Below, one piece after another: positions 14,903 through 32,500 of a stretch of DNA of 64,000 nt. Each line of letters starts with the position of its first letter. The stretch's first letter is position 1. Below the pieces are notes generated by a model. It saw only the letters and a program-made list of their open reading frames with translations, searched no databases and was not told where the DNA came from. The position numbers were made by a program, and so were the translations under genes. The stretch covers positions 1 through 64,000 of the forward strand of contig NIVC01000941.1 of assembly GCA_002269645.1 (NCBI GenBank), read 5' to 3'. The stretch is from Macrostomum lignano (taxonomy: Eukaryota).

Positions 14903-16058
14903 TTAAGATTCAATTTACACTTGTCAACTCAAACGTTTAGGTGATGGTACAAAAGACTTGAGCAACTAAAATCACTAGAGATAAATACATTAAATACAAA
15001 ACAACCGTCTATTACATTACTGGTTCCGGTTATTGCTTCGAATTGTTTGAACGCAAAAAGATTTTTTGACTTAACAGTGCGGCCGCAATTTGAAACCCCT
15101 CGGAGCCTGATAGCTCGCAGTCGGGCATTACAACGCCAGTAAAATTAGCTGGCTCTAAACCCGTTTCATACTGGAAATATTTTGATTTTGCTATAAAAAT
15201 TCAATATTTTGAAACTAGTTGATATCATGTAGGTCGTCATCAAACTCCTGTGAAACGATCGAAACTGAGTCATGCATGTGCTACACAAGGATGAATTATT
15301 AGCCCGTTCCTCGCCCCAAATCGTGAGTGAGTTGTTGAGAACTCAGGCTTGCGTTGGGTTGGTCTGAGTCTGCCTTACTGCAGTATAATTCACTTACTGT
15401 AGCTGTTTGCACCGGGCTGCAGCACAGAGTTTTCTCACAGTGCACTGTGTGCCAAGGCAGTCCAGCGTATGCTTGGACCAGGGACGTTTTAAGTTAGACA
15501 TCTGGATAGGCGGCGAATCTGCGATTTGGTCATTGTAGTACAACTATAGGAATTAATAATTACATTTACAGAGCATCCAGATTCATATTATCGCTGATTG
15601 CGAGCAGTTTATTGAGCATTTAAATGAGTCAGAAATTCTAAATATCAGATGCAGAGCTGCCAAGTCAATGCAGAACTTCGTAAGGTGCTCACTATTATAT
15701 TTTAGTGAATTTCTTGCAATACAAATGGGCGAAATTCCGGTGCCGAGAGTAATAGAAAGAATGATAAAGCTCCAGATTCACTCTATTAATACTCCCTGGT
15801 TGTGCGGCTGAGTTTGTGCTTCGGACAAAAAACGATGTAAAAATGCGAAGTCTTGTGTGTACAGAGGGTGCAGAGGGACACAGAGAAGGGGGCGTCAACA
15901 TGAGGGGTGGAGGCTTGTCAGAGCCGAGCAGAAAAGCGCGTGACACGAGGGCAAGGCAAAAAGACAGAGGCCACACTTCTTTCGGTTTGTGCAAGTCTCA
16001 CTGCGCTTCTTTCACTCTTTCGTTAGCGCATAGCAGCGCTCAGAAGAAACCAAGTTCG

Positions 16059-19000
16059 ATGCCAGGCCGCGCCAGCGCGCTTTTCCTCATCGTGGCCTCC
16101 TTGTGGGGGGCCTGCTCTGCGGCTTCGATTCACGTTGGTAAGCTTCCTCTTCTTCAAAGCTTTCACAGGGATTCATTTTCACACTAAATTCAATGGAATT
16201 CACTGGAACTAGTGACTCCAACTTCAGGTGTTAGCGATCAGCAGAGCGTGCTGGACGAATTTGCGGCTATGAACAGCAGTCAGTTGAGCAGCCTATTTGG
16301 AAACCATACCGTGACCTTTAAGCCAATCAACGTGCCTTCGGGAAGGACTAGCGCAGATATTACAACTTGTGAGAGCTCTAACCAAAAATAATTAAGGTTG
16401 CTCATTTTACTCGTCATCTTCCCTCGCAATTTACCTTTGTTGTTTTGGGGTAGTTCGTGCATTCGTGACACAAGTGAAAGTACGAGCTAAAGACTTTGCT
16501 TACTTCAATAAAGGTCGCACATTCCTCTTCTTTGATAAAAATATAAATCAGTAGCCATAGCCACAGTGGCCGTAGCTGGTCTTTGTGGTGCAGTTCTGAC
16601 AAAACCGACCCTCTTTCAGTTGTAAACTCCATCCGAAGCGAGTCATTCAGCCTAGTAATCGGCACCTTCAACGAGTTGCTCGCGTCTGCCTGCTCTTTTC
16701 TGACAATCCCATTCTATTCGCTGAGCGAGAAGACGCTGGACCCGGCGCTAACTTCTTCTAGCTACCTGAGCGACAGCACGACTCTGCTGGCAAATGCTCT
16801 GCTGGATGAGCTGATGCTAGCTTCTGTTAACCTCACGACTCAAGTCGGAAAGCGAGAAACCATCGTCATGCTCGTTGACGATGTTGGAGCAAGTGAGTTT
16901 CACCGGGTCCGAACAAATACTCGTAGCTATGTTGAGCTTCCGCGACAACTAAGAACCAAAGCATTGTACCTCAAGCTAAGTGCAGGGTCTTTTCTACTCA
17001 CAACTAAAAATCAAAGCATTGTACCTCAAGCTAAGTGCAGGGTCTTTTCTACTCACAACTAAAAATCAAATCATTGTACCTCAAGCTAAGTGCAGGGTCT
17101 TTTCTACTCACAACTAAAAATCAAAGCATTGTACCTCAAGCTAAGTGCAGGGTCTTTTCTACTCACAACTAAAAATCAAATCATTGTACCTCAAGCTAAG
17201 TGCAGGGTCTTTTCTACTCACAACTAAAAATCAAAGCATTGTACCTCAAGCTAAGTGCAGGGTCTTTTCTACTCACAACTAAAAATCAAATCATTGTACC
17301 TCAAGCTAAGTACAGGGCCTTTTCTACTCACAACTAAAAATCAAAGCATTGTACTTCAAGCTAAGTGCAGGATCTTTTCTACTCACAACTAAAAATCAAA
17401 GCATTGTACTTCAAGCTAAGTGCAGGTACTTCAAGCTAAGTGCAGGATCTTTTCTACTCACAACTAAAAATCAAAGCATTGTACCTCAAGCTAAGTACCA
17501 TTTGCTTCACTGCTCTCAATCTTACCCGCAGGGCTCAACATCCTGTTTGAGAGGAACATCACGCTGGAGTTTCGCATATCTGTGGTGAACTCCAGCAATA
17601 GCCCGGAGATTCGACAGCAGCTGTATGAAACAACTCTGTATTCACCTGTAGATTCCACTGTCTACATGATTGTCTCAAAGCAGCCCGGGTTCGCGTCGAG
17701 CATCCTAAAAGAAGTATGATATAATCTAAGTTAGAAAATAGGCAATTTAAATGTGCATAAAACACAGAACCACTTTTTCACAGACATCCTTTTCTCTCAT
17801 AGAAAGGGGTATTAAAATAAATATCTTTAGCCATAAAGCAATAAAATGTTTTTGTTTTTGGCCAAAAAGTTAGGATCAAATGTGAATACAAGCTAAAATC
17901 GCGAGTTTTTCCCTATCCTTTTTGGGAGTTATTGGCGGATATTAGCCAATAAAGGTCTGTTTTGTCTGCTTTTGGGGGACATAATGTTGAGACTTTTGCA
18001 TCGGTGTTCTGCTGCATGAATAATGGCTTCTAAAAACGCACCTATGTTTATATCCTCGAGTCATTAAAAAACTTTGGTTGCGTCAAAATCAGGTCCAAAA
18101 CTCGTTTTAACTTGTATACGAGCTATTTGCATATGAATCCTGTGTGACGAAACGAATGTGTTTCGATGGAATCAAAGTTTTATTGAAAAACAACCTTTGC
18201 ATCTTCATGCAGGCTGTATACCTCAGCATGTTGAAGAGCTCTGCCATCTGGATCGTTCCGGAACTGGTAAAACTGCTCAATTGTATTAATTTTTACTCAG
18301 ACATGTTTCGTGTATATATACTTTTTAATGTGCTCCACTGCCTCTATGCTACAGTTTCTTGATCAAAGCGAGATTCTCCCCTTCTATGCCACGGGAGCGA
18401 GCATCATCACCTTCCGGCTGCCGAACCCTGCAATCGCTAATGATGCCCAGCTCAACATGTCCCTGGCTAGTGACGTCATCTCTCACTTCATCGCCAGCTA
18501 TGAGAAGAATGTCACTAACGCCACTATTATGGAAAAAATTTTCATGGTACGCTCATCATTTTTTTGAATGCGCGATGCAAAGAAAACCCAGAATCTCTTG
18601 TGATCTATTTTGATAACGAGTTAGTACCCAAGGACCAATCAATTAGAAAAACACGAAACTACGGTCCTTGGAAATTTTTAGGAGGCAGGTTTTACCGAAA
18701 AAATACATTACGAAGAATGGAGCTTCTTTTTTTGTAAGCAAAAAATGTAAATTTCTTTTGATAGCAGACAAAATTTTCCTATTTTGATACGACTTAACTT
18801 TCTAATAACTCAATTGACATTTGTAGAGCTTTTTGTTTGAAAAATTTGAATTCTATGTTAATTTGATGTTTATGTCCTACCATAAAATTAAATGGAAATA
18901 AATTAAGGTATATCAAAAGTTAAAAATTGGGTCTGCCTTCTACTAAAAGCAATTACAAAATTTTGCTTACAAAATGAGAACTTCCATTCTCCGTACTGTA

Positions 19001-22000
19001 TTTTTCAGTAAAACCGGCCTCCTAAAAGTTTCCAAGGACCGTAGTTTCCTGTCCTTCTACTTGACTAGTCCCTGTCAGTACCACGATTCAGACTATTGAA
19101 GCATCCCATCACTCTGAGGGAGAATCTGGGAGACTGAAATCGCAGTGACTTTGTCTTCCTGTTGGTTGCCAGCTGCTTCTAAGACACTTCTACCCATCTA
19201 GCCATAAATGAAAGTCTTGCAGGCCTCAGATGTCACAATATACTCACCGTTTCGCTTGTTGCTCCGCAGACAACCACCGTCGGATCAGTGTCGATAATGC
19301 ACTTTAACTCGGTGGACAGACGTCTGGACATGTTTGCTGCTGATCTGATGAGCGTGGATTCTGGCTCGGCGACAAATCTGACGCTGGTAATTCGGACACT
19401 TAATTTGCCAGCTGCATTTTCAAACTTTAAATCACAATAATGCTATGCATATGTGAGTGTCTGATTCGGCCAAGCACTGGAAAGTGGGATGTCAACTGCA
19501 GTTGGAATGGAGCCAGAAGTTTAGCTCTGGACCAAACCGACTGCAATGACCGGACCTAACGTGCCCGACCAGTGCACAGGCTCGCTGGGAATTGAGTTAT
19601 TGATTGCAGTCGGTTTGGTCTCGAGCTTTACTTTGTACTGCATTCTAGAGCCTGAAGTTCGACTGAAATCCAAAGGAAGCAATTTGAATGGGGTGTCTCG
19701 GTGTTTCTACCGGTAGTCTTTAGTTGCCAGAGTTAACATTCCCTTTACCGATTACTTCTGTTCTATATTTGAGCTGAAACTGAATCAACTTGTTCTGCTC
19801 TGCAGTACGCCACGTGGAACGAGTCGGTGTCAAACAGCCTCCCGTCCTCGAGAACGAAGGAAACTCTGAAGTTGCCGGTGCTGCGCCTCGCCGGAGATTT
19901 GGTAAGTGAATTTCGCATTGCTGCAAGAATTGAGTTTAAATCAGCTGATTTATTGGTTACAAGCTGTTGAAACCCGCGGATTTTGAACCCGGGGAATTCC
20001 AATACCCGGAACTACTTTTGCATGTATTCTGAAATCTAAGGCCATACACAAACAAAAACTTGTTAATAGTTAGGAATTTAGGATAGAGTTAAACATAAAA
20101 TAGAGTACATTCGTGTACAATTAGTATTTAAAGCAAACATTAATATTGTTGGTTGGGGTGCTGCACAGAATGTCAGGCAAACTCATGGCCTCTGCCTCTC
20201 CTTGTGTCCCTTGGAAGTTGGATCCTTAGAAACTTCTATCTTTACCTTTTCTTCTGTTTTCTCTCTTCTCTGGTCTATGGTCTCTTCTCTCTCTCCTCTA
20301 TCCCCTCTTCTCTCGTCTATTCCCTCTTAATAATTTCTCTCCTCTCCTCTCCTCTCTGCTCTCTTATCTCTCCCTTTCTCCTGTTTTATCTCTTCCTATT
20401 TCTCTCTGCTCTCTATTCTATCTTCCCTCTGCTCTCTACTCTCTCTTCTCTCTCCTCTCTACTCTATTTTCTCTCTGCTCTCTACTCTCTCTTCCCTCTC
20501 CCCTCTTCTCACTCCTTACTCTACCCTCTCCGAACACTTCTCCTCTCTCCTTTCTCCTCTCCTCCCTCCTCTGTACTCTGTACTCTCTCGTCTCTCTCCT
20601 CTCCTCTCCTCTCTTCTATCGTCTCTTCCTTCGCCTCTCCTCTCTCGTCTTTGCTCTCTTATCTATCTCTCCTTTCTCTTCTTTTATCTTTTCTCTCTTA
20701 TCTCTTCTCATTTCTCTCTGCATGCTCTCTACCTCTATCTCTCTCTCTCTCCTCTCCCCTCTCTCATCCTTTCCCCTCTTTCCCCTGTCCTCTCGATTCT
20801 CTCCCCTCCCCTCCTCTTTCTTCACTCACTTCTCTCTCTCTCTCTCTCTCCCTTTGTCTCACCTTTCATCTCTCATCTCTTATTTCTTATCTATCCTTTT
20901 TCTCTACTCTCCCATCTCTCGTCTTTGCTCTCTCAGTCTTATCTTCCCTCTCTCATCTGTCATCTTTACTCTCGTATACTCGTATGTTCTCACCTCTCTC
21001 CTCTGTACTCTTCTCTTTCCCCTCATCTGACTCCTCTCTCCTCTTTCCTCTCAGATATCGTGTTCGCTCTCATCCCCTCTCTTTTCTGTCATCTGTACTC
21101 TCCAATTTTCAGTGTACTCTTCTCTTTACCCTCTTCTGATTCCTCTATTTCCTTACTCCTCTTCTCTCTACTATACTCTCTCCCCTCTATTCTCTTCTCT
21201 CGCCTTTCTGCACTCTGCTCTCTCCTCCTTCATCTCTCATCTCTACTCTCTTCTCACTCTTGTCTACTCTCCTCTGTCATCGATCCTGTCTCATCTCTCC
21301 CATCTTCTCTCTCCCTCTTCTCACTTCTACTCTTTCCTCTCTCTTCTCTCTCTTCTCCTCTCGCTTCTTACTCCAATATTATCTGCTCACTCCTTATCCT
21401 TACCCCATCATCTCTCTTCTTGTCTTCTATCTTTTCTCTTATCCTCCTCTCGCTTCTCCTCTCTTCTTATAGTCTATTGCTTCTCCTTTTAACTCTCATC
21501 TCATCAGCCATGAGCTGCATTCTTTATCTGGCATTTGAGGTTAAAGTCTGCCAATCCCCGCTTCGAAAGCGTTTGTGGGACGTAGTACTCTCATGGTTGT
21601 TATGCTTTAATCACATCATATTTCTGGCCAATTAGCAGCCCTGAGAGGAATTTGTGTATCTCCCTCCAGCCCAGCTCCACCAGACCACCACCACTCTGCA
21701 GCAGTCTAACAACCAAGGAAATACGTATTTCTTAGGAGCCATTTAAATTTTAAAGTACCTTATGCGAATCTTAATGTTAAAATTTTCATGGTGTAACTAA
21801 TTTAGTAGGATTGCATTGTAATCACTACTAATCAGTTATTAATTTTTCGCTTTTACAAACCATCCCATATCGCCTTGATTTGCCATCCACTGTTAAACTG
21901 CTGCAGACTTGTCTATACAGAGGACACTGGTTTGAATCTCTCGCTAAACTGTCATGGCTAAACGTAGCCTCTCCACGCGCGGGGTGCGGAGAAGGCTATT

Positions 22001-25000
22001 AAAAAGTTATTCCAAAACACTGTAGATTCGCTATGTACATTGAGCCCTATCGCCTGACCCTTCGTCTGGGCTGGGGGAATGAGTGAGTGAGTGGCACAAA
22101 CAACAGAAAAAGCAGACAAACTTCACATGCTTACAGTTTCCGTCCTGATTGAGATATCCGTCCTAGTTGAGACTTTACATGTAGGCAGATAATGAGTCAA
22201 TAAAGAATAGTGTCAAATGTGAAGTCAATCGCTTCACGTGGAGCAAAACTATGGCAGCCGAAAGTTAGGCATTTTAAAACCTATTCACACCCTTTGCCCA
22301 GATCGGGAAAGAGAGGCAGGCGGGTGGAGGTTGGGGTAGGGATTCCAAAATCCCGACATTTTACAATCCCGGGATTGAATAGTCCCGAAATCCCGATGCT
22401 GTTGAAATCCCGGGATTCAAAATCCCGGAATCCCGGTGCTTTTGCAATCCCGGGATTAAAAATCCCGGGATTCGATTCCCAAAAAAATCCCGGGATTCAA
22501 ATCCCGGATTTTTGGCCCCAATCCCGGGATCCCGGGATCCCGGGATTGGAATCCTAAGACGGACTGTGCGGCGTGCCGCGTGCAGTAGTCATGGTCTCGC
22601 GACTCTCAGAGTCTCAGGGCCTTTTCATATTACCAATTCCAGAACCAGAATCGGTTTGGAATTCCAAGAAAAACAGCAGTATAACTATTAAACTCTGTTA
22701 ATATTTGACTGCCTTAACAGCCTCACTTTGCACGATTTTTCACTTTCTTTTTGGCGACTGTCATTCAATGATAAAAACTTTATAGCACGTATCTCCCTCT
22801 AGTTATGGAGACAAAAAGTTATACTTCACAAATTGGTTCGGTTCTGGAACCAGAACAAGCACTATGAAAAGGCCCTCAGTCTCGTCTCGTGGTGGAAAAC
22901 GAAAAAAAGTTAAAATTATCTATCATTTACAGTTCACATTAACAATTTTTAGCTCAATTAGGACAGGAGCTTTGCAAAATGTTTAACGTTTCATTGAGAA
23001 ACAGCAAAAACAAATAAATGTTTTATTATTCAAATAAACGTTTAGACTTTAAATTATCTAATTTAGGCATTGAAAGGTTGTTCTAATCCCGGACCAATCC
23101 CGGGATTAAGGCCTTGAAACCCCGGGATCCCGATCCCGGACTTTTGCAATCCCGGGATTGGAATCCCAACCGTTGGGGTGGCTGCCTCGCTGAAAAAAAC
23201 AGCCTAACTTTAAAAGTGCACAGCGGCTTTCAGGATTAACTTTGAGACTCGAAATTTTACATGATTGTGCCAAAATAGTTTAAGATTATCTGTGTCAAAT
23301 TTGAAGCGAATCGGTAGAAGTGGAGCGGCGCTATGGGGGATTTAGTGAAAAAATCGCGCATTTTGAGCAGTTTTTTGTACTTTTAGGTAGGAAGACTTGA
23401 GTCTAGGAAATTTAAAGGTAGCCTAAGACATTCTCCGTAGTAAGTTTAGGGTGGGTGTAAAGTTTGGTGTCATTTGGTTTAGCGGTTTGGGAGTCCATAG
23501 CGATCAAAATTGTCCACACACAGACAGACACACAGAGTTTTGATTTTTATAGGTAGAGATTTGCTCAGGTACACTCAATGCCGTAACGTCAGCCTTTTTT
23601 CTCAGGGCACTTTCATCTTTTAGTATGCTATGAGCACATTAGCTAATATGCGACTTCGACATCGTGTGCCGTAAATTCTAATCAAGTGATGCAACTTGTT
23701 CCTCCCCGTTAGGTAAAGCCTTACCTGATGGGAGTGTCTGGTGGATATTCTGGCTACAGCATTAGTGTGCTGGAGAAGATCAGTAAAGACTTGTTCACTT
23801 ACGACCTAACCAGCTTGAAGCTTGGACCCAACTACTTTGAGTTGGTCCAGAAAGGGGTGAGATGCTGCAGCAAAGTTTTTCGCATTCATTTCTTTAATAT
23901 TTTGTCAGAGCCAATAGAATAACTAGATATGTCATTCGCAATAAATGTAGTGTAAAAAAACTGGGTGCCCATCATCATGAGCCTCCTACTCTATCCTTCA
24001 ATTGGGCGACGAGTGACTGGAAGTTTTTGAGAAACATATCGTCAGCCCCGCCCTACTGGGGGTTACCTCTCATTCCGCCGAAACGCGTTTTGCCGGAAAG
24101 GTCATTTCACAACCCGCGACGGAAAATTATTGCTCTATGGGTGGGACGCAGCTAAGACAGTCGAGAGATGTCTATGATCTAAAAGCGAATTCGCACATAA
24201 GAGCAGAAAATCCTGCTGTGCTCGCTTTTAGAGTAGAAGATAAACTCGTAATAACACTGAGAGCACCATGGCTCAAGCAGCTATTATACGAGCTGAGTGT
24301 ATATCTTCCATCTATCTACAGTATCGGTCTGATACGCTCGTGGTTAGAAACTATTGACCTTTTCGGCGAAATGCGTTTCGGCAGTACCCCCCCTACTGGG
24401 GGTTGTGGGAGCTTCAAAAGCTTTGAATATTCCAAAATTAAAACCATTTATTTCCCTTTTATGGTTAAAAAAGCGACTACATCTTTTTTAGACTGAAAAA
24501 CATAATCGGCATTGAAAAAGCCACCCTAGAGAATTGGCAGAAGTGGCGGTTTTCAATGTTGCCGAGTATCAGATGAACGCATTTTTCGGGAGTGACATAC
24601 CCAGTTATTCTAGTATCTGTGGTTTCCATAAGCACAACACTCAGCTCATTCGCTCCGTAAACCTTAGGAAGCAGACATGACAGTTAACCTGGTGGAGCTG
24701 ACAACAGCCCATATCAACGACACGCGCGTCTCATTTAGTGAGGTCCCATTGATGAGCAGCGGTGTCGCCGCCATGGGAAGATCGGCCATTAAAGAAGTGG
24801 ACTTCCTCAGCCCCTTGTACCCGCTCACATGGAACGTTTGGTTCGCCATTATCGCAGCCTTCATTATCTTGTCGGCCACGCTATACCTGACGGACAAGAT
24901 CAGCCCGAACGACTACAAGCGACCGAAATTCAGCGTTGCCAAGGCGGCCTTTTTTGTTTATTCCTCATTCGTAATGTCGAAGCTGAAGTCCTCGGCAGTG

Positions 25001-26690
25001 AAGCCAAGCTCTCGGATTTTCATTCTAATTCTGTGGTTCGCCTCCCTGATGTACTGCACAACGTACGGCACTAATTACTTTTTCCTTCTGATTCGCACCA
25101 ACCCGAACCTACCGTTCACGAACATGCAAGGCCTGTACGATGAGAGAGACAACTACGAACTGCTGATGGTTCAGAACAGCACGGAGTACGCTTTGATGCG
25201 AGCGCAGAACTCCAGCTCTGTGTACTGGAAATTGGCCGCGTCCCCGCCAACTTTCGTCCCCAGCATCGAAGCGGCTGCCAACATAGTAAAGAACTCGACC
25301 CTGCCAGGTCGGAAGAAGCCGATCTACATCGGCGATGAGCTCTCGGTGAATTATTACGCGGCTGGCGTCTGCGAATTAAAATCCGCCGGCAAGGGGGAGC
25401 TCTCCCGGAGTATGCACATCGTGCTCAGCAGCTCTTTGGACAAGAATCTCATTAGTAACATCAATAACCGCATCCAGGAGCTCAGCGACCGAGGCGAGCT
25501 AGAGCAGATAAAAAATAAGTAAGTAAATTGATGGATAGTTACAATCAAAGCTGATAGCGTGTCGCTCCCGACCTTCGTAATTGTGCTAAGTTACTACCGG
25601 CCTACCGGCACTTTTGTGACCTGAGCTACAAAATTTTGAACCCATTGATGTTGATAAATGGAGAAGCTTTCGAACCGACACGAATTCAATCGCTCCTTTT
25701 CAGTTACTGGTCCGTGCTGCTCTGCTCAGCTAGTGAGAACCTGATCACCTATTCCGAGCTAACAGAGGTGACAATCGACCAAGTTGCGGGCATCTTCATG
25801 GTGCTTGCGGGCGCTTTTGTCCTGTCATTCCTCGTAGTAGCAATGGAGTACATTGGCTACATAATCGGGCTTCAGGTTCAGCGAACTGTAAGCTGCCATT
25901 ACTGAATGCTTTTTTATTGCTTCATGGCAATTACATTTCTGATTGCTTCCCTCGGATAGTCTTACTACCCACACTACCCAGGGGCTGTAGCCTAGTGGTT
26001 AGAGCGTCGGACTCGCGACTGAAAGGTCTGGGGTTCGATTCTCGATCCCACTTGGAATAATTTGTGTCCTTGAGCAAGACTTTAACTCTTCATTGCTTCA
26101 GTTCACCCAGCTGTAAAATGGGTGCCAGCATTAGCTAGGGTAACTGAGGGTGTGTGGCGACACCCCAGTCCTTGTACTGAACAGCCGTACGCAGCCTTCA
26201 GATGCGCCGCGCAATAGCTGCGGCTGAGCTATCGGTTGCACATCTGCTGATTGGTGCAGGTGTAATCAATTATTGTTATGTCACTACCCATGCTACTTTG
26301 TAAGTAGCATATTGTGTAAATAGTATGATGTCACAGCAACGTTTTACTCTGGCAGAGAGCCGACCCGGACTTGGAATTCAACAAGGCCTACCGCGCCCTC
26401 GTCACCAGCATCACCCCGACCGGAGTCTACGTGAAGCTGCACGGCGAGAAGGAGTTCATACCGAATCAGATGCTGTCCCCAGATGCGTCCAAGGTGAGGC
26501 CTTATGCTCGCATGCTATATTTGGGCTTGAATCCAAAATTTGCAGACTGCTTACCAACTCTTTAAACAATCACACAATTGCAGGGCATGACAGCCTCGGA
26601 TCTGCAGATTTCATGCGGCTCTTGATCGAGATCACCTACCTGGGCAACGATCCCGCCGAAGGCTACCGAATCTTCCACAGGCGTGGCTGA
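16059..26690 (+). CDS. Divergent ionotropic glutamate receptor-family subunit with a C-terminal PNPase-type S1 domain
   Basis: Exons 16059-16137 (signal peptide MPGRASALFLIVASLWGACSA), 16228-16368, 16620-16892, 17532-17713, 18213-18266, 18355-18546, 19270-19386, 19806-19901, 23713-23856, 24668-25518, 25704-25887, 26356-26493, 26584-26690. All GT-AG with matching phases; about 852 aa if a 1-nt gap near 26621 is corrected. iGluR hallmarks: GYSISVLEKISKDLFTY (S1 lobe), FLSPLYPLTWNVW (pre-M1/M1), RIFILILWFASLMYCTTYGTN (M3), LBD cysteines (GVCEL..LLCS), VAGIFMVLAGAFVLSFLVVAMEY (M4). AATAAA at 26706-26711. Confidence 0.88.
16957..17497 (+). repeat. 55-bp minisatellite, ~10 copies, iGluR intron 3
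   Basis: Unit AACTAAAAATCAAAGCATTGTACCTCAAGCTAAGTGCAGGGTCTTTTCTACTCAC, with one truncated unit near 17420. Confidence 0.95.
18624..19081. mobile_element. Foldback/MITE-like element with long imperfect inverted repeats
   Basis: AAACTACGGTCCTTGGAAA (18656-18674) is the exact reverse complement of 19029-19047. Inverted similarity continues inward for about 100 bp; the spacer is AT-rich with no ORF. Confidence 0.75.
20230..21515 (+). repeat. CT-rich low-complexity tract
   Basis: About 1.3 kb of degenerate (CTCT/CTCTC)n. The overlapping Leu/Ser-rich ORFs are compositional artefacts. Confidence 0.95.
22337..23168. mobile_element. Nested non-autonomous DNA elements: ATCCCGGGAT-rich element interrupted by a 261-bp MITE
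   Basis: 22337-22556 starts TAGGGATTCC, ends GGAATCCTA and is packed with palindromic ATCCCGGGAT motifs; the motif block recurs at about 23095-23168. An inner element at 22616-22876 has perfect 14-bp TIRs AGGGCCTTTTCATA / TATGAAAAGGCCCT. Confidence 0.7.
25981..26280 (+). mobile_element. tRNA-derived SINE with CORE-like central domain (copy 1)
   Basis: A-box-like TAGCCTAGTGG, B-box GGTTCGATTC (26032-26041), then TGTGTCCTTGAGCAAGAC..TTAACTC..GCTTCAGTT..CAGCTGTAAAATGGG, resembling the MIR CORE consensus. Homologous copies at 35267-35590 and 59122-59418. Confidence 0.85.
26356..26690 (+). CDS. S1 (OB-fold) RNA-binding domain exons, PNPT1-like
   Basis: DPDLEFNKAYRALVTSITPTGVYVKL...NQML...DLQISCGS[1-nt shift]LIEITYLGNDPAEGYRIFHRRG* aligns by eye with the recalled PNPT1 S1 sequence [23 protein letters not shown]...HNTQL...[29 protein letters not shown]. 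As assembled, frame 0 stops at TGA 26623-26625. Confidence 0.8.
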
Positions 26691-27169
26691 GACACTCGGG
26701 CGCTGAATAAAGTTGCTGCTATTGCAAACGGTTGTTGACGTTGAGGACTGAATTGAGGTGCACTTTTAAAACTCATATGATCTCAAATGTAGTATTTATT
26801 CAGCAAAAGTATCATCTTTGATACCTTTGTTACCAATATTTACTGATGATTAAGAGCGTACTATCGGTAACAAGTATTTATTAACGCTCATATTAATGCA
26901 AAACTGGTCAATAAAATATTCTTCACTATATATCATGCTACTATGCCAATATATTATAAAAACAGGCTGTTCGTATGAACTTTCCATGCGGTGAATCCGC
27001 TATGCCGGATAGAGTATGCACAAATGAATTTGAGTTGTATAAACAGAGCGTTCACTGCACTAGATTCAAGTCGAACGGTTAGTGGATGCCGTACTTAAAG
27101 CTATGAGCATATGCCAACGGCCCCGAAATACTTCGTACGGCTCGTATTTTGCCTTTAAAGCTCTCTTCG

Positions 27170-28420
27170 CAGTGTTGGGCACTTCCGTTACCGAGTAACT
27201 TGTAAATGGTAACGCAAGTTACTTTTTCGTAAAGCGTTCCTTACGCAAGTTACTTTCCTATTTTGGTAACGGAGTAACGGTAAGTTACTCAAATTTCGGA
27301 AGTCCGTTACAGTTACTTTGCAACAATCGCAATATTTAAATTTAAAACTGATATGCTTAGCTATTACTCCAGTTGTCACATTTTTAGCATTTTTCATTCC
27401 TAAATTCAAAACTAAGTGAATAATATCATACGGTATTACGCTGTAATTAATAAAGAAATACTTGAAACATGTTTTTACTTTGTTATTTTCGGTAAAATAT
27501 TTTTGCTTTTTGTTTTTAAGTTAATAAAAATATTTTGTTTAGTTCTTAGAAACAAACAACCAAAGAAAGAAATTCATCTGTAGTCTCCACAAATCCACTC
27601 AGTGATCGACGTAGCCAGGAATTTTAATTGGGGGGGGGGGGGCGTTGGCCTGGCTGGCCATGCCTCATGCCATTGCCACTTTTAGCGCCGCAGGCACTCA
27701 TTTAAGCGCCGCAAGCACTCATTTAAGCGCCGCAGGCACTCATTTAAGCGCCGCAGGCACTCAATCGCCTCATGGTTTTTGGTACCCGCCACGCCCAACC
27801 CCACCCCCCCAGGTGGGGTGTCTTGCAGGTGGGGTGAAGTTGCCGCCCCAACGATTGTTAAGGCGGCCTCCCTGGCTACACCACTAAAGTCCACTGGCAC
27901 TGCACTGCACTGCACAATAATTTAATATTATGATAAATTGAAAATAAATAAAAAGACTAGTAAAGCAGACTATAGAGTGGAGTAAAGCCAGGTACTTATT
28001 ACGAGCGATGTATTATCAAGGACAACTGAAGTTACGTTAAGTTGTCCTTGTGTATTATAACTTATAATGTTATTAAAAATTAAATTGCGTTTTGCCTTTA
28101 ACGTTTCTGACCTTCAGCTTCTCTTCTTTTACGGAAAGGGCCTAAAGTGATTAAAATTTAATACAGTTACTGAAATTAATGTTGTTTTATTCTTCCTCCT
28201 GGCTTTCGCGATCATTTGTGCTGTTCCAGCGCATTTGCAATGTTAAAAAAGCAGAAAATTTTGTTAATAACATAGGTAACGGAAGTAAGTAACGGAAGTA
28301 ACTTAAAAGTTACCGGGTTTTTGTATAAAGTTACTAGGCTAACGTAAGTTACTTTTTAAAAAGTGGTAACTTAAGTTACAGTAACGCAAGTTACTTTTTT
28401 GAGTAACTTGCCCAACACTG
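27170..28420. mobile_element. Non-autonomous hAT transposon
   Basis: TIRs CAGTGTTGGGCA (27170-27181) / TGCCCAACACTG (28409-28420). Perfect 8-bp TSD TCTCTTCG (27162-27169, 28421-28428). Subterminal GTAAC/GTTAC motif clusters; no transposase ORF. Confidence 0.92.
27600..27885. mobile_element. Small TIR element nested in the hAT, carrying a 21-bp tandem repeat
   Basis: Ends CAGTGATCGACGTAGCCAGG / CCTGGCTACACCACT are imperfectly inverted. Poly-G run; about 4 copies of CACTCATTTAAGCGCCGCAGG at ~27682-27764. Confidence 0.6.
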
Positions 28421-29589
28421 TCTCTTCGACTCCGCACAAGTTAATCTTTCCTACGATTGAATGACAAAAGATCTTGCATCGAAAGTTTACGTTGCATTCG
28501 AAAATCGGCCCAATGCTTCCCAACGAAAACCTTCGCTGCAAAGTTTTCACAGGCTTAGGTATTTACATAAGGTATGTTTCAACCATGTTTCCTTATACTG
28601 CCACCCTTGCTTCTCGTAAAATCGAAACAGTCACTGCAGAGGCGGAGTCTCCGTGCAGACTTAAGGCTGACACGCCCAGACACTGGGAGCAGTAGAAGCA
28701 TGCGGCAGAGACAGCAGCTGCCATGTAGTGAAACAAGCCCCGTGTCGACCCCACTTCACTTTGCGTCGCTCCTGCAATTATGTCCCCCACCCCACCTCTA
28801 AAGTCAATTGTTGGGCCTACGCTCTGACTTAACTCTTTAGCTGAAATGATTTTGCCGAGAGCCTCTGAATTGCGTCTAGCTGGACTGGAAATCTTGGAAG
28901 CAGCCTCGCGATCCTCTGACTCTGTGGGCGTCAGCGTCAGCGTCTGGCAAACTTCTTTTGTAACAAAAGATGTTGGGGGGAGCCAGCATGAAAGCAAGGT
29001 ATGCGAGGTGTTTTCTGAATGACAGCAGGTTGGAAGCTCTGCTTGGTTGCTTTAGAAAGTAGATTTCAATGTTGAACAGCAATACTTTACGTGTACTTAC
29101 TGAATGAGAGGCTACGGTTGCAAGTGAAAAGGGGAGCGAGAGACACACAGAGAGAAATATATCAATCGAGAAGATAGTAGCAAGCCAAGATAAGTGCGAA
29201 AATGGGACAAACAGACGAAGAAGAAAGGGAGAACAAGCAAGGAAAAATATAGGGAAGGATTTAAGGCCGCATGCGAGTGGAGCACGTCATTCATGCATGC
29301 TGCCTGTGCTCTGTAAAACAAGGAAAGGACAGGAATGCTAGAAAGAAACAAGAACAAGACAGGAGGCCCGGACCCCGCCCCTTTCATTGGCAGTCAGCAG
29401 AGCTGTCCAATCGCCGTTTCCCATGCTTGGTAGCGCCTGCAGTAGGGAAACCAGCGCCTTTGCTCGACAGCTGCTTGCCTGCCTCCGGTTAGCTTTATTT
29501 CTCGCCCGTCTCTCGCAGGCTACTGATAGACCGCGTAAGTATTGAATCGGAAAAGCTTCTTGGTCCTCGGCATCTTCAGCACCTGCACG

Positions 29590-32500
29590 ATGTGGTCTTC
29601 CGTTGCCATGGCAACCCCTGGTCAGGGTATGACGCTACCGATGCAGCGAAACGACAGCAACGTGTCGACAGGAACGGTTGCGTTACCGGCGGGTGACAAC
29701 GTAACTGCGCTGGCATTTCAAGCCCGCTACGGGTATTTGCACATCGTTCTGACCAGCTGCATCCTGGGAGTCATCATTCTGTGCACCATAATTGGCAACG
29801 TGTTTGTAGTGGCGGCTATTATCCTGGAGAAGAACTTGCAGGTAAGGTCTGACTCCCCGACTTGTTCAATGCATCGATATTTTGAAGACAGGGTATTCCA
29901 AAGTTTATAAGCGCTAAGTTGTACGTAGCCATTCATTTTCAAGGGTGGAACTGCTTGACTGGCATTGTATTGATTTTTCTGACACTGATTCTTTTAAGTA
30001 CTTCTGGTCTGTTGAAACTCTTTACAGGGTATGGACGTCTCAGGGTGTGTTGAAAAACTGTTAAAGCTTTGAGCTCTACAGCAAATAGACTACGTCAAAT
30101 ATTCAAAATATACTCCTATTTTACTTATAATGCGGTAGAAAAAGCGAATTTCTCCCCTGTAATTCGTCAAACATGGTGTATAGAAAGTTTCTCCCATACA
30201 CGTACAACTACAACTACAAAATACAACAAATAGCAAAAATATGCTCTCATCAGTAGGTCTGAAAACAGCCCTGAAATGACAGTCAGTCAGAAACCCTTGC
30301 TACTGCTACATCCTCGGTTTCAAATGCATAATGAGAAGGCATTTTTGGTGAAAATTGGAGAAAAACTCTTGAAAAGTGGTCCAAAATTGCCCGGGTTGTG
30401 AAAGCTTCTCGAACTTCTTCAGAGTTTTCCAAATCACGTTGTGCTTATTCTTGCGATAGCCAGTTTGCATCAGTTCAGAGGATTTAACCTTGTGTAGAGA
30501 ATATTGCAAGACTTGAGCTTTCATTTATTTACGATAAAATTATTAAAGAAACATAAGCCACGAGTTTCTTTGTGATCGCGTGAGGAGTACAATTTCTGCT
30601 CCAAAAATAAATTTGCTCTATCTGAGCAACTCGACTCCTTTGTGCTTTTCGGTTCACTACTCCATTGCTCATGTGAGCACTTGAAGCGAGCAATGGACTG
30701 CACGCGGAAGTCTTCATTGATATAGCTTGAACTCTAACGATGGGAAAGCATGGCATCATAAATGATGGCCCTCTTGAGATCCGAAAAGCATGACAATCAA
30801 GCAACGGGGCGTCACTTGCAGTATAAAAATGTTTTCACGCCAATTTCGCATCCTTCTTCGCTGCCCAGCCTTTGCTTGTCTCACCGGCTCATGAGCACTT
30901 GTCTAATCTTTGCTTGGCTCACCTGGCTCATGAGCACTTGTCTAATCTTTGCTTGCCTCATCGGCTCATGAGCACTTGTCTAATCTTTGCTTGTCTCACC
31001 GGCTCATGAGCACTTGTCTAATCTTTGCTTGTCTCACCTGGCTCATGACCACTTGTCTAATCTTTGCTTGTCTCACCTGGCTCATGACCACTTGTCTAAT
31101 CTTTGCTTGTCTCACTGTCTCATGACCACTTGTCTAATCTTTGCTTGTCTCACCTGGCTCATGAGAACTTGTCTAATCTTTGCTTGTCTCACCTGGCTCA
31201 TGACCACTTGTCTAATCTTTGCTTGTCTCACCTGGCTCATGACCACTTGTCTAATCTTTGCTTGTCTCACCTGGCTCATGACCACTTGTCTAATCTTTGC
31301 TTGTCTCACCTGGCTCATGACCACTTGTCTAATCTTTGCTTGTCTCACCTGGCTCATGAGCACTTGTGTAAATGGGGAAACCCGGTGGTGAACCTCTGGC
31401 CTCAGCTCAGAATTGTGCAATTTCTCACCGAGAGAAGGCATTTTCAGCCTCCCTCTGGTGATCGGAGTACCGTTTCACTTTTTCGTCAACTGCTACTCAA
31501 AACAGCCTCCGTTCCCACCTGAACTCAGAGTTCTGCCAGTCCAGCATGCAATGCTGTGAGAAGGAGGAAGAAAGGAAAGGTGGAGAGCAAGAGAAGAGAT
31601 GGAGAGTATTCCGATGCGGCAGTAAATTGGCTGATGCTTGATGAATAATTGAGAATCTAATCGGTATCCAGCCTGCTTCACCCATTCTTCTGCCCATCTG
31701 TGCTTCGGTTTTAACTTCAACTTGGTCCTTCCTACCTAGCAACCTTGCTTGCGATCGCGACTGGCTCGCTGTTGATCTTTACGAGTATGCCTCCTTGCGA
31801 CGGTAACTGGACCAGACTTTGACGGATTATACACAATAAAATCACGCGCTCGTAAAAATCAATCGACTTCTACGAGTCACAAAACGTCATTTCTTGAGCT
31901 GTGACTCGCTGCAAACAGGAAGCAGTAGATTTAACAGGCCCGCAGTTGGCTGAAGAGGCTTCGCGAGGGAGGAACACTCCGCCGGATTGCAGTTTTTCCT
32001 TCTCAGCAAGATGCCATTGCATTGTACCCAACCTGCAATATTTTTGCGCAAGAAACTGCAAAATTTAGCCGGTTTACTTCTTGCTGTGCAGCTTGGAGAC
32101 AAGACGCGGCACTTTTACGCCATGCCTTCAGATGCACTTCCAAGCCTCTACTACGCTCGTACACGTTTAGACTTAGTAAAAGTCATATAAAAAGAAAAGA
32201 AAGGCATAAAAGTGGTCATAAAATCAACCGTTAGCTTTAAATTGGGACTGGTGCAAAGAACCTACGGTCCAGATGGTTGCGATGCTTCCATCGGCCCGGC
32301 GGCCTTCGCAGCCGATCAAAACGATCCCCCGTTTGTGTGTAAGGAGATGAAAAAGAAAGCCGATTAAACCCTGCCTGTCCATTTGCTTTTTTGACTTGGC
32401 GGCGGAATCCGCAGTTCTGGCAGAGAACTGTTCAGCTAAAACTACTCAGTAATTCGAAAATCTTCTTTGGTGGCAGCATCCGTAAAGGACATGGCTACCA

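Follow-up and report, generated by a model that had tools for sequence, protein, structure and literature searches.

A divergent glutamate receptor-family gene in Macrostomum lignano with a C-terminal S1 domain related to that of mitochondrial polynucleotide phosphorylase

The receptor gene and its exons

The window analyzed here is a 64,000-nucleotide stretch of the Macrostomum lignano genome (positions 1 to 64,000 of contig NIVC01000941.1; assembly Mlig_3_7, GCA_002269645.1), and the gene of interest within it, BOX15_Mlig012789g4, encodes a divergent member of the ionotropic glutamate receptor (iGluR) family followed by a tail that resembles the S1 domain of mitochondrial polynucleotide phosphorylase (PNPase; PNPT1 in humans). 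The annotated gene spans 15969 to 26625, with the same numbers in contig and window, and all features described below lie on the forward strand. A profile search identified its product as PAA74530.1 (P0005; “hypothetical protein, partial”), which is 100% identical to the protein read from the window and maps onto it in 13 exons. By exact mapping of PAA74530.1, ten coding exons between 15969 and 25518 account for the upstream iGluR-family part (signal peptide, amino-terminal domain, ligand-binding lobes, and membrane segments M1 to M3), with the initiator Met near 16059 and with M1 to M3 and ligand-binding lobe S2 all placed in one large exon (24668 to 25518).

The M4 exon (25704 to 25887) reads (N)YWSVLLCSASENLITYSELTEVTIDQVAGIFMVLAGAFVLSFLVVAMEYIGYIIGLQVQRT in the window, is matched by the mapping of PAA74530.1, and aligns to M4 of GluA2. 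The split codon AA/T is completed by base 25704, and the codons of the M4 exon run from 25705. A phase-0 donor, GTAAGC, closes the exon at 25887, and reading through it leads to a stop at 25903 to 25905, both as given in a preliminary description of this DNA. The M4-to-S1 intron (25888 to 26355) is missing from a cDNA-like contig, L001, described below. It is followed by S1 exon A (26356 to 26493; acceptor ...ctggcag, donor GTGAGG), which encodes RADPDLEFNKAYRALVTSITPTGVYVKLHGEKEFIPNQMLSPDASK, the N-terminal half of the S1 domain (a homolog of the oligonucleotide/oligosaccharide-binding, or OB, fold), is in phase 0 at both ends, and is found in the window, in the mapped protein, and in L001. 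A phase-0 intron within the S1 domain (26494 to 26583), at the same position as in the paralog family Mlig026429, separates it from S1 exon B (26584 to 26690; acceptor ...attgcag).

Exon A and the start of exon B fall where the preliminary description placed them. Its reading of exon B as one open frame did not hold, the slash in its translation having hidden a 1-nt deletion. As assembled, exon B in phase 0 gives GMTASDLQISCGS and then TGA at 26623 to 26625, and LIEITYLGNDPAEGYRIFHRRG, with the stop that follows it, lies in a different frame from the phase-0 start of the exon. With an A restored after 26622, the exon reads GMTASDLQISCGSMIEITYLGNDPAEGYRIFHRRG and then TGA at 26688 to 26690. The C terminus of PAA74530.1 is ...DASKGMTASDLQISCGS, and as assembled this gene copy encodes about 59 residues of the 81-residue tail, losing the last 22. 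An AATAAA polyadenylation signal (26706 to 26711), already noted as the first after M4, lies 16 nt past the intact-frame stop and is the only A[AT]TAAA between M4 and 26800. About 14 residues separate the end of M4 homology (..AMEY) from the start of S1 homology (DPDLEF).

A divergent receptor of the iGluR family

The assignment of the upstream part to the iGluR family comes from Pfam Lig_chan (PF00060), which matches 24677 to 25519 with an E value of 4e-14 and scores 53 bits on the window exon and 58.8 to 68.2 bits on full proteins, against a threshold of 30.8. The full protein of an intact copy is 852 amino acids long from Met, and the full-length copy also gives a weak ANF_receptor match. 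Candidate N-terminal exons searched one by one gave no Pfam match, being short and divergent. The best relatives in the Protein Data Bank (PDB) are the AMPA-type GluA2 (E = 7e-19), the delta-type GluD1, and the NMDA-type GluN2B, with E values of about 1e-15 to 1e-18. Lig_chan, the order M1-M2-M3-S2-M4, an amino-terminal domain, and KxxYW before M4 are all shared with these classical iGluRs; unlike them, the receptor is very divergent overall and its tail, as judged by homology, corresponds to a folded domain. Classical iGluR tails are disordered and carry PDZ or kinase motifs.

Neither the canonical SYTANLAAF motif nor the lobe-S1 ligand Arg was found in the alignment of the receptor to GluA2. 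The M3 gating motif has become TTYGTNYFF, which is invariant in L001 and in both paralog families, and GluA2 R485, the alpha-carboxylate Arg, stands opposite Asn (..AHINDTR.. versus LVR) in a HMMER alignment that is uncertain here by a residue or two. The transmembrane region is nearly invariant between the paralog families, which argues for a constrained channel-like protein. A divergent pocket without the glutamate-contacting Arg and a lineage-restricted expansion are also seen in variant ionotropic receptors (IRs) and in lineage-specific iGluR clades. Unlike IRs, this receptor keeps an amino-terminal domain (the weak ANF_receptor match) and has the S1 tail, which is not known from any IR.

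The S1 exons are part of the receptor gene

The 25887-to-26356 splice proposed in the preliminary description is used both by PAA74530.1, whose tail junctions are 25887 to 26356 and 26493 to 26584, and by L001. Gene models of Mlig_3_7 were generated with StringTie and TACO from RNA sequencing (RNA-seq) data and a de novo transcriptome (PMC5730564). L001 is a Logan contig of 1369 nt from SRR28338165 that comes from a relative and encodes a protein 80% identical to that of the window. It lacks the 184-nt and 468-nt introns and joins M4 in frame to exon A at the predicted junction, where ...EYIAYIIGLQVQRN passes directly into RANPNLEFNTSYRALVTSITPAGVYVKLHGEKEFIPNHMLSPDASK (residues before the junction, ...GLQVQRN).

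A second line of evidence is the paralog family Mlig026429 (P0002, P0004, and P0016), which lies at an unlinked locus of the same genome and is 39% identical overall to the window family, Mlig012789. It shares both phase-0 intron positions and has an intact tail, KVNSRLEFMKPYQAEVTNVTPSGIRVRVQGWVEFLPNQMLSPDPTK followed by KMTAADLEIRIGDSVEVVYLGNDPKTGERLFRRNAESVEVGKIGI and a stop. Identity between the two families is 52% in the tail versus 39% in the whole protein, and the fusion is older than the split that separated them. Nei-Gojobori ratios of nonsynonymous to synonymous substitution (dN/dS, or omega) were calculated between the window and L001, for which dS is about 1.4: exon A gives 0.051, M4 gives 0.04, and the remainder gives 0.09; on these sequence comparisons, the tail is kept under purifying selection.

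It is very improbable that the S1 exons come from a different gene artefactually merged with the receptor, whether a PNPase whose other exons lie beyond the window or the downstream member of a trans-spliced polycistronic unit. About 7% of the assembled transcripts of M. lignano are polycistronic precursors (PMC5730564), and the M4-to-S1 intron does contain a repeat element, both of which count in favor of such a merger. However, the in-frame phase-0 junction occurs independently in L001, the same arrangement is present at the second, unlinked paralog locus, no in-frame ATG precedes LEF in exon A, and omega is 0.05 in the frame read from M4. The window itself holds no RNase PH or KH coding sequence, as the preliminary description had observed: tblastn with Escherichia coli PNPase matches exon A only. 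A nested PNPase gene, which that description had named as an alternative, is contradicted by L001, the paralog locus, and selection, as is a polycistronic artefact; a chance open reading frame (ORF) was likewise rejected. Because the RNA-seq-based annotation, L001, the second paralog family, and selection agree, the receptor-S1 fusion is genuine: it is real, expressed, and conserved. The channel-S1 architecture put forward earlier is supported to this extent, with the reservation that the window copy as assembled encodes only part of the tail.

The introns at these junctions have features of their own. A tRNA-like element (25981 to 26050), identical in sequence in gene copy g1, lies inside the M4-to-S1 intron. 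It scores 17.6 bits against Rfam tRNA (threshold, 29), and ARAGORN called no tRNA there; on these two results a functional tRNA was rejected, and the element is probably a tRNA-derived short interspersed element or a pseudogene. The M4-to-S1 intron of Mlig026429 is of the GC-AG type (cgaatg/gcaagt; L002, 5104 to 5430), versus GT-AG in the window gene, and the S1-internal intron of that family is 1.3 kb long and packed with short tandem repeats.

The tail is related to the S1 domain of PNPT1

When a profile of the tail was compared with all PDB sequences, the sole significant match was human mitochondrial PNPase (9kjr, 9kjt, and 9njb; E = 4.3e-7), with positions 3 to 78 of 81 aligned to PNPT1 residues 630 to 705 (76 of 81 positions covered). 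S1 domains of bacterial PNPase, ribosomal S1, the exosome, eIF2alpha, and RNase II/R were absent from this search even at an E value of 10. BLASTP against the human PNPT1 segment gave 34% identity over 71 ungapped residues for the window tail and 32% for the paralog, bearing out the resemblance to mitochondrial PNPase noted in the preliminary description. An S1 profile hit had also been predicted, and the paralog tail provides one with Pfam S1 (PF00575; 24.7 bits, E = 3e-5, above the 22-bit threshold), in addition to the PNPT1 match; the window tail falls short of the threshold, as detailed below. By homology, the tail is a PNPT1-type S1 domain.

Searching 1.84 billion representative proteins with phmmer, using a tail query whose wrongly framed 13-residue middle segment slightly lowered sensitivity, returned P0001, P0002, and a spurious WD40 protein only, so the fusion is known so far just from Macrostomum-type sequences. 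No PNPase appeared in that search at an E value of 1e-3 or below, which indicates that no PNPase in the library gave rise to the tail by recent copying. When the tail by itself was run in a word-index protein search there were no matches, not even to P0001, with which it has many words in common; this outcome is not evidence of absence.

Homology to the mitochondrial PNPT1 S1 extends over the whole domain, the domain is C terminal in both proteins, and two motifs are common to them, LEF..Y.A.[IV]T.I..TGV.VKL and Y[FL]G.DPA[DE]G. The context differs, with S1 mounted on an RNase PH-RNase PH-KH core in PNPT1 and on a membrane channel in the receptor. No RNase PH or KH Pfam domain was found in the full receptor proteins, which are therefore not PNPases; only the tail is PNPase derived. 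The C terminus of iGluRs is cytoplasmic, and whereas PNPT1 is mitochondrial, the receptor tail is expected to be cytosolic and juxtamembrane.

Further differences concern the residues that contact RNA, which in nuclear magnetic resonance work on the S1 domain of E. coli PNPase are reported to be F635, F638, H650, D680, and R684. Read from alignments, human PNPT1 has T, M, H, D, and R at these positions and thus keeps the His and Arg that are replaced in the receptor tail. The Asp is kept in both receptor families, and the window family adds a conservative change of Phe to Tyr. The motif F[IL]PN[QH]MLSPD (26452 to 26481 in exon A; residues 814 to 823 of P0004) is invariant in L001 and across both families. 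It includes a Ser-Pro site and stands where canonical S1 domains have their RNA-contact segment, GLVHIS.

Taken as a whole, we put a probability of about 0.8 on the reading that these genes encode a divergent iGluR-family subunit with a cytoplasmic C-terminal S1 (OB-fold) domain derived from PNPT1. Several observations weigh against it. Pfam S1 scores the window tail, or its repaired version, at 16.6 bits, below the gathering score of 22. AlphaFold2 models of the tail, built from 3- and 4-sequence alignments, are all-beta with 5 to 6 strands but have predicted local distance difference test (pLDDT) values of 40 and 62, and Foldseek comparison of these low-confidence models with the PDB gave no significant match (best E = 0.66). 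The S1-containing proteins Rpb7, RNase II, RNase R, and Dis3L2 are among the nonsignificant top matches and carry no weight, and because of these low-confidence and nonsignificant results the OB fold rests on sequence homology only. L001 runs past the exon A donor (..DASK, then gtagag..), giving VES and a stop, and exon B is absent from its last 166 nt downstream of DASK; intron retention or use of an alternative 3' end would probably account for this stretch, and a short-tail isoform may exist. The five contact positions read T, Y, P, D, and Y in the window family and S, R, P, D, and E in the paralog, and the tail is not basic, with acidic and basic residues about equal in number. Finally, M. 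lignano's own PNPT1 gene was not located, which leaves the donor gene putative.

A frameshift in the window copy of the gene

The assembly contains four copies of the gene, g1 (L003), g2 (L007), g3 (L006), and g4 (the window). Compared with g1 and g2, g4 lacks an A between 26622 and 26623, where GGCTCT-TGATC stands against GGCTCTATGATC and the site as read is GGCTCTTGATC. Over 381 nt around the tail, g4 is otherwise identical to g2. The tails of g1 and g2 read ...ISCGSMIEITYLGNDPAEGYRIFHRRG and end at a stop equivalent to window positions 26688 to 26690. Copy g3 (L006, 7240 to 7619, at the end of contig NIVC01002172.1) carries three indels within a 380-nt stretch, including a +T at the g4 deletion site, and its annotated protein ends frameshifted as ...HGEKIHTESDAVPRCVQGHDSLGSADFMRLY.

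The deletion in g4 is probably an assembly consensus error rather than a real lesion. Mlig_3_7 was assembled from PacBio reads with Canu and polished with Pilon, and about 180 Mb of it lies in duplicated blocks at least 95% identical (PMC5730564). An intact tail is present in eight cluster members (P0007 to P0014), of which the six A0A1I8J... entries were predicted from a different assembly. One member, P0009, is intact and also carries the g4-diagnostic residues AIANDAQ, SLPSSR, and YRALV, while P0012, derived from ML2, shows a separate, local double frameshift. Judged from these sequences, consensus indels are common in the assemblies.

A real frameshift would make g4 a duplicate undergoing decay in a genome that is partly polyploid, its receptor ending in a truncated and probably unfolded tail (...DLQISCGS and a stop); this is possible but rather unlikely. 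The deletion lies outside any long homopolymer and could on that ground be real, the stop is present in both the window and the annotated protein, the g3 tail is disrupted too, and several near-identical copies in the DV1 genome could tolerate the loss of one (PMC5730564). Against this, g4 matches the intact copies throughout the remaining 66 nt, the alternative assembly yields intact proteins that bear the g4-diagnostic substitutions, and the three g3 indels and the double frameshift of P0012 show how common consensus indels are.

Repeats and neighboring features

Outside the tail exons, an early receptor intron contains a 55-bp tandem repeat (16945 to 17426; 8.8 copies, 96% identity) that yields a spurious ladder of 45-amino-acid ORFs, and the intron from 19905 to 23715 holds a CT-rich low-complexity block at about 20150 to 21650 in which GC and AT skew are extreme. 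The gene is 10.7 kb long in g4, whereas g1 and g2 span about 6.9 kb, which makes much of this latter intron copy specific. The upstream neighbor (1 to about 14900) is a large gene whose multidomain product includes VWA and WSC domains; it also precedes g1 and g2, which shows that the duplication is wider than the receptor gene. Downstream of the receptor gene are a 21-bp tandem repeat in 4 copies (27680 to 27763) and an ORF (29542 to 29910) with a hydrophobic segment that resembles the start of a class A G-protein-coupled receptor and has no Pfam match.

Origin and possible roles of the tail

An exon-shuffling origin from PNPT1 is plausible. The S1 exons are also terminal in PNPT1, and a PNPase gene would have supplied its terminal S1 exons, polyadenylation signal included, by capture downstream of an ancestral receptor gene, after which the M4 exon would have been spliced from its own donor instead of being read through to the nearby stop. 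Given iGluR topology, the product would place four small folded beta-barrels beneath the corners of a tetrameric channel. The tail would most likely be a cytosolic binding module for single-stranded nucleic acid, another polyanion, or a protein partner, and such a module would control channel localization, assembly, or modulation.

What the module binds can be argued in two directions. There is about an even chance that the S1-derived tail no longer binds nucleic acid and instead has a role in protein interaction, assembly, or trafficking or offers a site for regulation; it would then replace the disordered PDZ-ligand tails of classical iGluRs. Contact residues are replaced at four of five positions in the paralog and at three of five in the window family, the invariant F[IL]PN[QH]MLSPD with its Ser-Pro takes the place of GLVHIS, and acidic residues balance basic ones. 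Yet both aromatics are missing from the S1 domain of human PNPT1 itself, and OB folds bind nucleic acids through varied surfaces.

A functional RNA-binding S1 domain, which might tether RNA or ribonucleoproteins (RNPs) at the receptor, as the preliminary description suggested, or allow RNA or oligonucleotides to modulate the channel, has perhaps three chances in ten of being right. Homology to an RNA-binding S1 domain over its full length, purifying selection of equal strength on the tail and the transmembrane region, and the conserved Asp and YLGNDP..G.R motif in common with PNPT1 all point this way. The canonical contact residues, however, are mostly substituted, the tail has no net positive charge, and from iGluR architecture the tails would sit at the corners of the tetramer rather than form a PNPase-like ring. 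It is a doubtful, though conceivable, extension by analogy that these receptors would be the first ligand-gated channels with a built-in RNA-binding domain, docking specific RNAs or RNPs or having their gating modulated by cytosolic RNA or oligonucleotides. The analogy is with TRPM2, a cation channel whose cytosolic C-terminal NUDT9-homology domain came from a mitochondrial enzyme and became a ligand sensor. In both cases a channel gained a C-terminal domain copied from a mitochondrial enzyme that handles nucleotides or nucleic acids; TRPM2 belongs to another channel superfamily and carries another domain, and that the S1 tail might act as a sensor is pure conjecture.

Implications for iGluR architecture

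A literature search on the fusion, its locus tags, flatworm iGluR tails, and the Sequence Read Archive run found no description of it, and the fusion proteins are public under the labels “hypothetical” or “PBPe domain-containing.” The iGluR-S1 fusion thus appears to be undescribed and, so far, lineage restricted to Macrostomum. Its significance is limited accordingly, and its functional role is at present a suggestion from homology. Within these bounds, a homolog of a folded domain has been held under selection, about 14 residues below M4, through the split of a gene family, in a position where iGluR tails are normally disordered. The gene would be a clear-cut case from nature in which capture of 3' exons produced a new channel architecture, in an animal that is tractable by transgenesis, RNA interference, and in situ methods. 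If the tail binds RNA, it would link ion-channel signaling directly to RNA localization or sensing.

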